Below are positions 7,713 through 63,991 of a stretch of 64,000 bases of DNA, piece by piece. Below the pieces are notes generated by a model. It was not told the origin of the DNA, searched no databases, and saw only the letters and a program-made list of their open reading frames with translations. The position numbers were made by a program, and so were the translations under genes. The stretch lies in contig NC_087247.1 of assembly GCF_037042905.1 (NCBI RefSeq), positions 21,080,001-21,144,000 of the forward strand, written 5' to 3'. The stretch comes from Lytechinus pictus (taxonomy: Eukaryota). Position 1 is the stretch's first letter. Each line of letters begins with the position of its first letter.

Positions 7713-10700
7713 ATGAAAAACTTCAATATATTCGTGCACTTGGCCAGTATTTTTGTGGCTTTATTGGTATGTGATGCCATTGGCCAGCAGCCACAGGTTG
7801 ACATTCCAGATTTCGGAACCATTTATGGGGAAACTATCCCTTTCAAGTCAGACTATCCCGCGGTCGACACCCATGTCAACGCCTACCGCGGGATTCCTTT
7901 CGCTAAGAATGCCTCGCATTATCGCTTTATGAAGCCTGAGCCTCTGGACTCATTGGAAGATGGCTGGCTGAATGCTACAGCATACAGCAGTATATGCTGG
8001 CAATTACCTGAAGTGCTAGAAGGTGAATCACAGAGCGAAGATTGTCTGTATCTCAATATATGGACTCCGCATCCTCAGGTAGGCCCTCTCACAGATCATA
8101 TTGATTTCCGTTTCTTCCTATAGAAGCTTCATCAGAGCATACATGTTATTCATTTGTTATATATATATACATAATGGCGCGATAGCTCAGTCGGTAGAGC
8201 GGGGGTTTCGGATTCCGGTGACCCGGGTTCGATTCCCAAGTGGTGCGCTAGTGCCCTTTGGTAAGGCAGTTATCCTCATTACCAGGTCCCTCGGAGAGGA
8301 CCTTAAGCCGTTGGTCCCCTGGTTGCTTGCTCACAGGCATTCGTGCTTTCTTAGCAGTCAGGTAAAACAACCTCGGTATATATATATATATATATATATA
8401 TATATATATATATATATATATATACATATAGTGTGAAAGAAATGGATGAAGAGAACAATGGTAGGCGTAGCTTAAATCAAGGTTCCCCAGAGCTATCTAC
8501 CCTTTGGAAATATTGGTGTTGCCGAAAAAATGTCTCTGCCGGGAATCGAATCGGATCGAATCGAATCTGCCGGCACCGGCGTTCAAAGCTGGGGGCCCGG
8601 GTTCGATTCCCGGCAAAGACATTTTTTCGGCATCACCAATTTTTCCAAAGGGTAGATAGCTCTGGGGAACCTTGATTTAAGCTACGCCTACCATTGTTCT
8701 CTTCATCCATTTCTTTCACACAATATTTAAATAAAAGAGTTGCCAAAGCTGTTGTACATGTATAACTTCACACATTTATATATATATATATATATATATA
8801 CAGTGCGTCCCAGAAAAAAACGAAACCGAGATTTATCATAACTTAATCACAAATAAAATAGACAAATGACCTACCAATGTAAAGCTTAGAATCTCCTCTT
8901 TCATCTAATATTAATTAGATTATTTCTCCTTCACGCATGAGTGAGCAAAAATAATTTGAAGAGGGGATACCAAAAAGTCATTTGGCGGGTTGTATCTAGC
9001 TTTCAAAAGGAAAACCACATTTTTTTAAAGTTCAATATCTGCTCTTTAATTTGATACCTCAATTACAGAAAATGGTCAAGAAATAACAAAGTTCTGGTTA
9101 TTTGAAATAAGGCTTGAATTTCAATAATTTCATAAAATGAAGAGGTTTTACAGGCTAGCGTTCAAACTCACTCGACACTCCGTTTTGTTTACGATCAGCC
9201 ATGCGTATTAAGTCTTTTGTTAACCATGCGATAGCTTCTGTGGGAAACCGGTGAAAACAGTTTATTTAATGAAATTATGGAAATTAAAGCCTTATTTCAA
9301 ATAACCAGAACTTTGTTATTTCTTGACCATTTTCTGTAATTGAGGTATCAAATTAAAGAGCAGATATTGAACTTTAAAGACATGTGATTTTCTTTTTGAA
9401 ATTCATATACCCCCGCCAAATGAATTTTTGGTATCCTTCCTTCAAATTGTTTTTGCTCACTCATGCGTGAATGAGGAATAATCTAAGTAATATCAGATGA
9501 AAGAGGAGATTCTAAGCTTTACATTGGTAGGTCATTTGTCTATTTTATTTTTGATTAAGTTATGATAAATCATCGCTAGATCTCGGTTTCGTTTTTTTCT
9601 GGGACGCACTGTATATATCTATATATATATATATACATATATATATACATACACAAGAAAAAAACGTTAACTTAAATAATCTATTTAATTTGTTTGCAAT
9701 TCTTTTTTCTCTCCCCTGTGTCTCCGAAGGGTCGTACGTGATCGATTTGTCTTGTAATGAATAGTGTAGGTGGTAGAGTGGCTAAGCCGCTGGCAGACAT
9801 ATCAAAATGCACTGCTCTTTTCACATATTGAATATATCAAAATACACAAAGAATCATTCTACCTTCGAGAGCACGTAGTCTACATGGAATATAGGAATAT
9901 ACACTCGCAATTTTATAGCAAACCTTCTTCCAGAGAGAGATCGAGAAAGAATGATAAGTAAATGTAACAGATCAAATAACGTTCATGCTGTGGTGCAATC
10001 ATGGTCAAATATTTTAGGTGACTCTACACTGTAAAGAAAAAAATCATGATTATTAAAGCATGAATGCATATTGTGTTCTTATCAATGCAATTTCAATAAT
10101 CATGTAATCTCTCATTTTTTGTGGTCTACTACTAAAAAAAAATCTTGTTTCAATTTACATACAGCCCACAAACGCACCCGTAATGGTGTGGTTCCATGGT
10201 GGCGGATTTGTGATAGGGTCTTCATCTAAAGCCAGCTATGAAGGCCACGCCCTTTGCGGATACCATGGAGTGATCCTGGTGAATACCAACTACAGGCTCA
10301 ATGGATTTGGATTTCTCTCTACTGGTAAAGCTCGAATATTCTCATTATGATTTTGTAATAGTCTGAATTCATGTTTACCAAAGTATTATCCACATAATTT
10401 GAAGATTTTGCTTTCCATTTACTCATGTTTCCTGTTTAGTTCTTAGGTCAACAATATTTTAGTTACGCGTTTCTCGCAGATTTCGCTTTGGAGTTATCAA
10501 TAAAATTTTATCACTGTATAAAATGACAATTATTGATGTTAGTTTTTCAACAATGAGCTTATATCAGACTGAATTTGGAGAGGATCACAAAATTCGAATT
10601 ATAACAAGATGCATTTATAGATGTCCTATCGTATCCTTAATCACGCAAATTTGTTCGAGAGTTTTAGTGTAAATTAATTCAACTAGTGCAAGTTACGGTG

Positions 10701-61200: not shown

Positions 61201-63991
61201 CGTTTTATATACAATGTGTAGGCCTTCTGATAAGAAGGGGGGCAGATCAAAGACCGTTCGTTGGAATTAAGGAATGGGATATATATCTCGCTAATTAAGT
61301 AATATGAGCTGATTTTTTTTATTCAACACTTTTATTGTAACCAGGGTCGGGATGTGTATCTCGCTGAAATAAAATAATGAAACTCGAATCACGAGCAGAA
61401 TAATTTGTTCATACTTGATTGACTTAAAAACTGAACTTTTTCTTAAATATTCTCTTGAGCAGATAATTGTCCCATTCATGGCAGTGTGAGCGCGGAGGGC
61501 GTGCGATTTTGTTTGTTTATCTGCTTTATGTAGCGACCTATTTATTTATTTATTCATTCATTAATGTTTTATTTATAACATGTGATAAAATAAGGTGGAG
61601 GATAGTCCGATTCAGTTATAAAAAAATGTTTTAAGACGGAGCCCTCCACCACTGATTACAAACATAATATAGCACATAAACATGATAATATAAAATGAGC
61701 ATAATTTCACTCATTATTTAGCACCCCATTGGGTGCTGCTATTGTACCAACCCCTTGAGTTCAAATTTGCACCTAATTTCTTAGCGTGTAGGGTAGTAAG
61801 AAGTTGGTGTATAATAATCCTAATTTAATATTAATCTCGCATATCTATTTTGTAATTTGTGTAGTTTGGAACTTTGGATAGATTTGTTTTTATAATTATC
61901 ATTGCGTGGTAAAATTGGAGCAAAATATAAGGTTACAAGAGTTTCATGAGGTATTAAGGACTTTATGCGGCAAATACATCCAGTTGTTTGTGATATCTTG
62001 GTATTTATATGTTTTATATGCTTACACCACGCCAGTTGTGAGTCAAGTAAAACGCAAAGTGTGTTCTTCGTTTCTTCGTTTTCTCATTTTTTTTTCTCCT
62101 TTCCTCCTCCCCTCCCCACTTTCCTTTATCCTTCCCTCCTTTTTTGTTGGCAAACGGCGTGGTTCGGGACCCCCCCCCCCGGCTATTGGACTGATCTACA
62201 GTCTTCTCCCAAGGTTCCCAATGACAAGTACCTGATCTGCTACTGTATATAGATCCTTGGTTTCTACCGCCTGCAAGCATGCTACTAGATCAGGCATGGA
62301 TGTCAGGTTACAGCCAAATGCTTGTCCTATCTTTTTAGCGTTCTCCACCTCTTTCTCGGGGTTATCTTCAAAAGCCCATCCAGCGTTTGCTGTACCACTC
62401 TAAAAAGAAAGGGGAAAATAATAAGAAATCCGAAATTAAAAAGAAATTATGTCTTAATCATTTAGCAAAATATTATTGCTATTAATTTCATAATTTGATA
62501 TGAAATTTTATTTCAACAAGGTCGATTTCCATTGAATTGTCATTAATGAAAGGACTACAATACTTGATATCTAATCAACATACATCACTTCAAAGCATAT
62601 TAAAAATTTAACTTTCTGTTTAGGCTAGCACCCTGGGTGTCCAAAAGAAATATCTATGTTTAAGAGTAGTAATGTAATTAAATATGCAAAATAATTTTCT
62701 GATCAATTTAATCAATTTAAGATTAGACAAAAAAAAAATTCAAAGATATGTAGGCAGCATTCATACCTGCATGATGCCTTGCTGAAACAATCCACGACTA
62801 AGATTTGAAAGCAGATGGAAACCCACAGAAGCTGAACCACAACTTACTCCAAATATTGTTATTCTGTTTGAATCACCACCAAATGCTATACACAAAATAT
62901 TGGTAAAATATTACGATCTTCCATCATAAAAGTTATAAATGATAAAAAGAAATGCAAAATTTTAAAACATAGTTTTGTATACCATGTTTCGATATGAAAA
63001 ATTGAAAGGGAATTACATTAAAAATCAGTCCAGGTTATTTCCCTTTTTAGGGCAAAGTGTGAATTTATCCACAAAATATCCCTGATTTATTTCTTCTCTA
63101 TATATAGTATTAATCAGACAACATATTGCCAGTGGCGCCGTAATGTAGTTTTGATCAGGTAAAGCATATATAGGAGGGACTGACAATTCCGTTTTAACAA
63201 TAGTTTAACCCTCAATCCCAACTCTTTGCCGAACGTTTCGGAGGCACTATTTTTATGTCCCGAGAGAAAGCATGCTTTTAGTACAAACTTTTGAGAAAAA
63301 AAAATTACATGGTTTTAACATCATTTTTAAAAGAAATTATATGGTTTTTAACATATTTGTCATACATTCAAAGCACCAACTCTTACATAATTAAAACGTA
63401 AATCAAACGTGCTTTTTTTTTAATTATATACAACGAGGATAGTTACTCTTCCTTCATTCTTTGTACGATTCTATACATTAGGAAAGATAAGAAATAAGAT
63501 AAAGATGTGCTTATTAATATGTATATGGTATACAAATTTGACTAAAGACGAATAGGAAATATTCTGGGGATTCGAAAATGCTACAATGAGATAATATTGG
63601 AGCTCGAAAATATTCCGGTGCCGAAAATTGTATTCCACAAAGTTAATGTATTATGAAATGTTTGTATACCTATATGATTGCATTCTGAGATATGGAAAAA
63701 AGAGTCATTTTTTATTTTCATTGTTTTTGCAAATATAGGCCCAAATCTTAATTTTGGCCCATATGTAGGTATGTTTAAAAACGAAATCAGAAGTTAAAAA
63801 AAAATACCATTGCCCATAAAATAATATAACTAAATTATAATCTATGATACCTTCAATATTAGATTTAATCCATTGCCCATAAAATAATATAACTAAATTA
63901 TAATCTATGATACCTTCAATATAAGATTTAATCCATTGTAAAGCAGCAACTTGGTCTAACATTCCAATGTTGCCAGGAGCTGCATCGCTTT
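55231..63991 (-). CDS. Carboxylesterase/cholinesterase-like gene 5, 5'-partial (exons 4-10 in window); apparent 1-nt frame problem before the WAT exon
   Basis: Exons 63991-63914, 62885-62767 (GVSCG), 62399-62232, 58067-57607 (TTDEG), 56326-56132 ([14 protein letters not shown]), 55864-55684, 55340-55231 ([24 protein letters not shown]). Exon sizes track the paralogs (78/119/168/195), but exon 9 is 181 nt rather than 182. Confidence 0.87.
56584..57361 (-). mobile_element. Helentron/HINE-like element, reverse copy of the 19631-20324 family
   Basis: Both ends match 19631-20324 in reverse complement (GTGGAATGCCTCTGACAGTCTC.CCTGCATTAC; TTGACGACG..GCCGTCGGAAAA.GCGCCTATAGTCTC). Confidence 0.65.
58609..59218. 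mobile_element. Kolobok/T2-MITE-like element, family of 1297, opposite orientation
   Basis: TTAA-AGGACAATTCCACCC...GGGTGGACTTGACCT-TTAA; reverse complement of the 34171 copy. Confidence 0.8.
59778..60990. repeat. Diverged tandem array with about 210-bp unit, six units
   Basis: GGGGTGA..TCGGCAGCCCCCTGA...CAGCACTTC.TTATATG recurs near 59811, 59994, 60205, 60421, 60631 and 60844. Confidence 0.8.
63807..63938. repeat. 63-bp tandem duplication covering the 3' end and donor site of a gene 5 exon
   Basis: CCATTGCCCATAAAATAATATAACTAAATTATAATCTATGATACCTTCAATAT.AGATTTAAT at 63807 and 63870, one mismatch. Confidence 0.9.

Follow-up and report, generated by a model that had tools for sequence, protein, structure and literature searches.

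Gene models, tail exons and transcripts

Here, we examined a window of 64,000 bases of AT-rich eukaryotic DNA from Lytechinus pictus (C3:21080001-21144000 of an 812-Mb genome), "the window" denoting this whole stretch, and found it to carry five genes of the COesterase fold, one on the + strand (gene 1) and four on the - strand (genes 2-5). Four of them (genes 1, 3, 4 and 5) are intact: each has an open frame, a full Ser-acid-His triad and all three disulfides, whereas gene 2 is defective. Each of the four intact genes ends in a separate exon resembling the T peptide, or WAT helix, commonly regarded as a cholinesterase hallmark; in gene 2 this exon is only a WAT-like remnant. Judged from sequence comparison, the array probably encodes secreted non-cholinergic esterases that are sister to the true cholinesterases and have kept the T-peptide exon by descent.

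Gene models were built with a purpose-written splice-aware protein-to-genome aligner, the references being relatives retrieved with the largest exon of gene 1, and two boundaries were adjusted to NCBI proteins (the start of gene 1 exon 6, at 12317, and the end of gene 3 exon 6, at 31038). Gene 1 (+ strand, coding region 7713..14093, stop codon 14094-14096) has eight coding exons at 7713-8078, 10165-10324, 10774-10851, 11266-11384, 11743-11913, 12317-12948, 13379-13560 and 13975-14093. Two in-frame AG acceptors lie 21 bases apart at its exon 6 (12296-12317); use of acceptor 12296 would add seven residues that are not present in the L. variegatus ortholog, and the pair may reflect alternative splicing or an ambiguity of modelling. 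Genes 2-5 are built on ten-exon structures on the - strand. Gene 3 (26653..38370) has exons at 38370-38179, 36149-35973, 33341-33182, 32240-32163, 31626-31508, 31205-31038, 30658-30201, 29976-29782, 28352-28171 and 26762-26653, and those of gene 4 (43309..51640) are at 51640-51467, 50507-50331, 49942-49783, 49091-49014, 48680-48562, 46848-46663, 46247-45808, 45455-45261, 43822-43641 and 43424-43309. Gene 5 crosses the window end: the part inside (55234..64000) holds exons at 63991-63914, 62885-62767, 62399-62232, 58067-57607, 56326-56132, 55864-55680 and 55340-55234, and its first three exons (65042-64883, 68281-68102 and 69210-69073, in continued window numbering) were recovered from the next 8 kb (L001). 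The models of genes 1-4 begin with a signal-like hydrophobic peptide; the modelled first exon of gene 5 encodes a similar hydrophobic stretch, its start codon not having been located. Pairwise identity is 46-48% among genes 2-5 and 34-37% between these and gene 1.

The initial annotation had guessed that similar proteins may already be catalogued, and NCBI indeed lists them under automatic "cholinesterase-like" names, within a family that is echinoderm-wide. The product of gene 3 is 99.5% identical to P0305, "cholinesterase-like [Lytechinus pictus]" (the same gene), and that of gene 1 is 96.8% identical to P0278, "acetylcholinesterase-like [L. variegatus]" (its ortholog). The nearest sequences found for gene 4, two Diadema proteins and one other, share about 50% identity with it. 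Gene 3 contains an assembly gap (37802..37938), which falls in its first intron and is flanked by exon 1 (38370-38179) and exon 2 (36149-35973). Both flanking exons have the same order and strand, and because they join into an N-terminus that matches P0305 and gene 4 completely, with 0 residues missing, this gap costs gene 3 no coding sequence.

In each of the five genes the separate last exon encodes Trp and other aromatic residues at intervals of about seven positions and, 1-4 residues before the end, a Cys. These exons lie at 13975..14093 in gene 1 (+, ending ...PCN), 26653..26762 in gene 3 (-, ...KKTC) and 43309..43424 in gene 4 (-, ...SCNK); that of gene 5 (55234..55340, -, ...GCS) is degenerate, with one aromatic changed to Val, and gene 2 retains a WAT-like remnant (17157..17285, -, ...NCI) whose second aromatic is changed to Asn. 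Genes 1, 3 and 4 exceeded the curated cut-off of the Pfam AChE_tetra profile (PF08674; 25 bits), with 31.6, 36.0 and 30.5 bits, respectively, and the profile found no match in the gene 2 remnant. We also trained a tail hidden Markov model (HMM) on 17 true-cholinesterase tails only, with 1164 shuffled tails as the null, which gave 48.3 bits for gene 1, 41.7 for gene 3, 43.0 for gene 4, 22.3 for gene 5 and 9.9 for gene 2. Because the best shuffled tail reached 10.7 bits, the WAT resemblance lies beyond chance in genes 1, 3, 4 and 5 and at chance level in gene 2. Thus, the initial claim that all five paralogs carry the tail stands for genes 1, 3 and 4 by Pfam and for gene 5 by the HMM only, and has to be dropped for gene 2.

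In genes 1, 3 and 4, a phase-1 intron precedes the tail exon and a phase-2 intron comes before that; both align in position with introns of the same phase in two canonical cholinesterase genes elsewhere in the genome (L002 and L003, described below). This common position and phase indicate that the cholinesterase-like tail is inherited from a common ancestor rather than convergent, so that the proposal that these genes keep the cholinesterase tail module applies to genes 1, 3 and 4, more weakly to gene 5, and not to gene 2. Most echinoderm members of the clade to which the window genes belong carry WAT-like tails (20-49 bits with the tail HMM), among them sea urchin, starfish, sea cucumber and crinoid proteins; none was detected by the tail HMM in the annotated hemichordate isoforms sampled or in bile-salt lipase. 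In the AlphaFold model of gene 3 (P0305; pLDDT 89.5), the tail forms a helix at 581-609. Two clade members from other species, P0330 and P0325, have a hydrophobic C-terminal stretch in place of the WAT helix, which suggests that alternative C-termini provide membrane or GPI-type anchoring, in the manner of cholinesterase H forms.

Splicing of the terminal exon was seen in RNA for gene 1, in two studies of the same organism. A 2212-base contig (X1) and a 577-base contig (X15) splice 12947/8|13378/9 and 13560|13975 at GT..AG, without differences, and extend to 14366; these transcripts thus connect the tail exon to the catalytic exons at precisely the junctions of the gene model.

Gene 2 (17157..25823, -) consists of seven exons (25823-25650, 25029-24844, 24292-24133, 22962-22885, 20761-20643, 19270-19103 and 18788-18349) plus the WAT-like remnant. 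Exons 1-7 are open and contain the catalytic Ser and Glu. By alignment and by eye, the two exons with the catalytic His and the last disulfide Cys were not found between or beyond exon 7 and the remnant, and the approximately 1 kb separating these (18348-17285) holds no COesterase-like frame. A 3465-base contig of run X15 crosses 16271-18800 unspliced and without differences, and therefore supports the assembly there. In run X1, one low-depth contig joins the donor GT of exon 7 (18349|18348) to 17268, where an AG acceptor is lacking and a single T has been added; the tail is in frame at this junction without the extra T and meets an immediate stop codon with it. Gene 2 is a decayed copy that has lost the catalytic His and is transcribed mostly unspliced.

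Active site and phylogenetic position

We compared active sites by alignment to Torpedo and human AChE and in a 19-sequence alignment. The genes matched the Pfam COesterase profile (PF00135; cut-off 27 bits), with 42-89 bits for exon pieces, 414.6 bits for P0305 (gene 3) and 438.9 bits for P0278 (the gene 1 ortholog). The first Cys-Cys (omega) loop is encoded at 7713-8078 (+) in gene 1 and, on the - strand, at 25029-24844, 36149-35973 and 50507-50331 in genes 2, 3 and 4; that of gene 5 lies beyond the window, in L001. It measures 15, 17, 14, 14 and 15 residues in genes 1-5, respectively, compared with 26 in AChE, BChE and the AChE of the same genome. This confirms the loop of 14-17 residues lacking Trp84 that had been described for genes 1-4, and extends it to gene 5. 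The Trp84 segment is missing through a deletion of 9-12 residues, both in the five window genes and in each of the clade members examined.

The remainder of the gorge is altered as well. Fourteen aromatic residues line it (PMC3045457), and genes 1-5 keep 4, 3, 4, 6 and 5 of these, compared with 14 in vertebrate AChE, 10 in the L. variegatus ortholog of the AChE of this genome, 8 in BChE and 5 in bile-salt lipase. The peripheral-site residues Tyr70, Tyr121 and Trp279 and the acyl-pocket Phe residues are replaced, and the Asp72 position is also not kept. The catalytic Ser is present in all five genes and accompanied by His in genes 1, 3, 4 and 5, which also have the oxyanion-hole glycines, three conserved disulfides and no transmembrane segment; gene 2 lacks the last disulfide Cys. 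The triad acid is Asp in gene 1 (KDDGS, with the His in GVAHAED) and Glu in genes 2-5. The serine motifs read GQSAG in gene 1, GVSSG in gene 3, GESAG in gene 4 and GVSCG in gene 5. Immediately before the Ser, all members of the gene 1 subfamily have Gln; genes 3 and 5 have Val at this position, and genes 2 and 4 have Glu.

To place the array phylogenetically, we used a 76-row quick tree and a 45-row careful bootstrapped tree, which were concordant. True cholinesterases formed one clade (100/99) of vertebrate AChE and BChE together with amphioxus, arthropod, mollusc, echinoderm and hemichordate proteins. The window genes fell into a second, cholinesterase-like clade (100/99; 96 SH-aLRT in the quick tree), composed in this sample of echinoderm and hemichordate proteins only. 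The two clades are sisters (99/97) with respect to an outgroup of bile-salt lipase and neuroligin. In the cholinesterase-like clade, gene 1 falls in a subfamily represented in sea urchins, starfish and sea cucumbers, and genes 2-5 belong to a second, echinoid subfamily with Diadema members.

Three other identities were considered and rejected. The tree excludes the window genes from the true AChE orthologs. They are not orthologs of bile-salt-activated lipase (CEL), which falls in the outgroup and has proline-rich repeats where these genes have a WAT-like tail. Neither are they neuroligin-like: the Ser is present in all five, there is no membrane segment, the proteins end in a WAT helix, and neuroligins also fall in the outgroup.

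The same genome has two canonical cholinesterase genes, both on C16 and both with the full 26-residue Trp84 loop and a WAT exon (L002:1979-6801 = G000:C16:29391979-29396801; L003:2428-9911 = G000:C16:1597428-1604911). One of them is 99% identical to the L. variegatus "acetylcholinesterase-like" protein P0151. In each, the catalytic domain lies nearly all in one large exon, a layout that contrasts with the 8-10 exons of the window genes. The initial view that the array does not encode true cholinesterases is supported by three observations: its genes do not nest within the AChE and BChE orthologs but in a sister clade, Trp84 and most gorge aromatics are gone, and two canonical genes are found elsewhere. 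The tandem array itself continues on the same strand to approximately C3:21.32 Mb, with at least nine genes over about 240 kb, and the tail HMM gave 28.9 and 34.3 bits for tails of further paralogs in it. Ten exons genome-wide pass the AChE_tetra cut-off, two from the canonical genes and three from the window.

Proposed function of the enzymes and of their tails

Two pieces of established cholinesterase knowledge bear on function: loss of Trp84 abolishes efficient binding of choline esters, and WAT helices with a terminal Cys drive the formation of tetramers and dimers. On this basis, we infer non-choline substrates and tail-driven oligomers for the intact genes. The family has retained the ancestral cholinesterase scaffold with its three disulfides and, in echinoderms, the separate T-peptide exon, but lacks the omega-loop tip that carries the choline-binding Trp, together with most gorge aromatics. 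Its secreted members would offer a wider active site in which bulky or uncharged carboxylic esters are hydrolysed, and the tail helix with its terminal Cys would link them into disulfide-bonded dimers and tetramers, perhaps with a proline-rich partner at the centre. Gene 1 represents an old subfamily (GQSAG, Asp acid) and genes 2-5 a second, echinoid-specific one, with the canonical Trp84 genes on C16 as the obvious candidates for a cholinergic role.

A bolder extension is that WAT-polyproline assembly operates on a dozen or more non-cholinergic secreted esterases per echinoderm genome, as a system older and broader than cholinergic signalling, giving mixed disulfide-linked tetramers of co-expressed paralogs or using a proline-rich organiser other than PRiMA; we regard this as doubtful at present and put it forward tentatively. 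A complex prediction for four copies of the gene 1 tail, run without controls, scored under the mark and weighs neither way on binding.

Several observations weigh against the reading of the array as working, tail-assembled esterases. Read-based evidence of splicing is limited to gene 1, and the raw RNA runs X19 and X20, which leave other tissues uncovered, contained no reads on genes 1 or 2. A residue other than Glu before the catalytic Ser, where nearly all family members have Glu, may lower or change catalysis. The outgroup consisted of bile-salt lipase and neuroligin only, and such thin sampling limits the placement of the two clades as sisters. Regarding the tail, gene 5 scored below the AChE_tetra cut-off (17.9 bits, E 0.0026), the tails of the genes 2-5 subfamily are 29-46% conserved compared with about 50% for the body, and the tails of starfish relatives lack the terminal Cys. 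A genome search for PRiMA (PF16101) returned only sub-threshold proline-rich matches, ColQ-type PRAD proteins not being among the targets of the search.

Under a rival reading, the tail is an inherited vestige that no longer drives assembly and is either neutral or limited to marking the protein for retention or degradation in the secretory pathway. In its favour, conservation of the tail falls below that of the body in genes 2-5, the tail is sub-threshold in gene 5 and at chance level in gene 2, P0066, which is the closest relative found for gene 5, has another residue in place of the first tail Trp, and no PRiMA homolog was found in the genome. The pattern of conservation nevertheless argues for a maintained tail: W586, W593 and W600 each reach at least 90% conservation in a set of 40 cholinesterase and cholinesterase-like proteins, tails can still be recognised in four classes of echinoderms, none of the five genes has lost the terminal Cys, and the gene 1 tail is 84% identical to that of its Diadema ortholog, compared with 74% for the remainder of the protein. 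On balance, we consider a purely vestigial tail unlikely.

It is less probable still that the intact genes encode working cholinesterases of an unusual kind (pseudo- or propionyl-like), binding choline esters without Trp84. The gene 1 subfamily does offer a candidate substitute, a Trp directly after the first loop Cys, in a conserved CW motif that gene 1 shares with Diadema and Holothuria. Furthermore, the best solved relatives of gene 3 are AChE and BChE both by sequence (about 340 bits, with its tail aligned to the T peptide) and by fold (template modelling (TM) scores of 0.85-0.92 for the model), and the clade is sister to the true cholinesterases, with the T-peptide exon common to both. 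Nevertheless, the Trp84 segment is wholly deleted, the 3-6 gorge aromatics retained are fewer than in BChE, the Tyr70, Asp72 and Trp279 positions are not kept, and the genome already has its two canonical genes. Finally, that the array consists of non-catalytic binding or adhesion proteins like neuroligins, or of decaying pseudogenes, is very improbable: gene 2, without its His exons and with mostly unspliced transcripts, and the Val in genes 3 and 5 where nearly all active members have Glu, would fit such an origin, but genes 1, 3, 4 and 5 have open frames, the full triad, oxyanion-hole glycines and no transmembrane segment, and Diadema relatives at 75% (gene 1), 67% (gene 2) and approximately 50% (genes 3-5) identity speak for long-term conservation.

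Our finding is descriptive and sequence-based. The WAT tail has passed by descent to a large sister family without the choline-binding site and is mostly conserved there, which uncouples the history of this quaternary-assembly module from that of cholinergic function. The family thereby provides natural variants for probing the role of the tail where no ColQ or PRiMA partner is evident. It also calls for caution in practice: a protein named "acetylcholinesterase-like" in an echinoderm genome need not be a true cholinesterase, and esterase biomarkers measured in sea urchins need not report on one. Our literature search found no paper on WAT-tailed, Trp84-less echinoderm esterases; subscription journals and ESTHER lay outside its scope, and a prior description is possible.

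Other features of the window and comparison with known systems

The window contains a second assembly gap of 173 N (3918-4090), upstream of gene 1 and outside every gene model. Between genes 1 and 2, the intervals 14200-15200 and 15600-16400 show contig depth in the thousands, with many variant letters and loose ends in all four runs, and look like high-copy interspersed repeats. Within the intron of gene 3 from 29782 to 28352, a 101-residue open frame (28979-29281, - strand) resembles the C-terminal part of a retroelement reverse transcriptase; it had no Pfam match at E 0.01 or better, and six further long open frames of the window were likewise without Pfam matches.

Among the closest known systems are the tailed cholinesterases, AChE_T and BChE. 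The window genes share with them the COesterase fold, the three disulfides and the Ser-acid-His triad, have their best sequence and fold matches among these enzymes, and resemble them at the C-terminus in the separate last exon, the Trp-rich amphipathic helix, the near-terminal Cys and the phase-1 intron at the same position. They differ in an omega loop shorter by 9-12 residues and devoid of Trp84, in keeping only 3-6 of 14 gorge aromatics, in the loss of peripheral-site and acyl-pocket residues, in insertions before and after the His in genes 3-5, and in belonging to a separate clade. CEL is likewise secreted and has a short first loop (15 residues) without Trp84, an Asp acid as in gene 1, and 5 of 14 gorge aromatics; unlike the window genes, it groups with the outgroup and carries a proline-rich repeat rather than a WAT helix as its tail.

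GQSAG and GxxHxxD/E are motifs typical of insect juvenile-hormone esterase. The gene 1 subfamily shares both, a motif-level resemblance for which no phylogenetic link is expected. Further counterparts are the automatically named echinoderm proteins ("cholinesterase-like", "cholinesterase 1-like" and "acetylcholinesterase-like") of Diadema, Strongylocentrotus, Asterias, Acanthaster, Patiria, Holothuria, Apostichopus and Anneissia. These fall in the same clade, have the short loop and mostly carry a WAT-like tail; they are orthologs and paralogs of the window genes, from which they differ in nothing essential.

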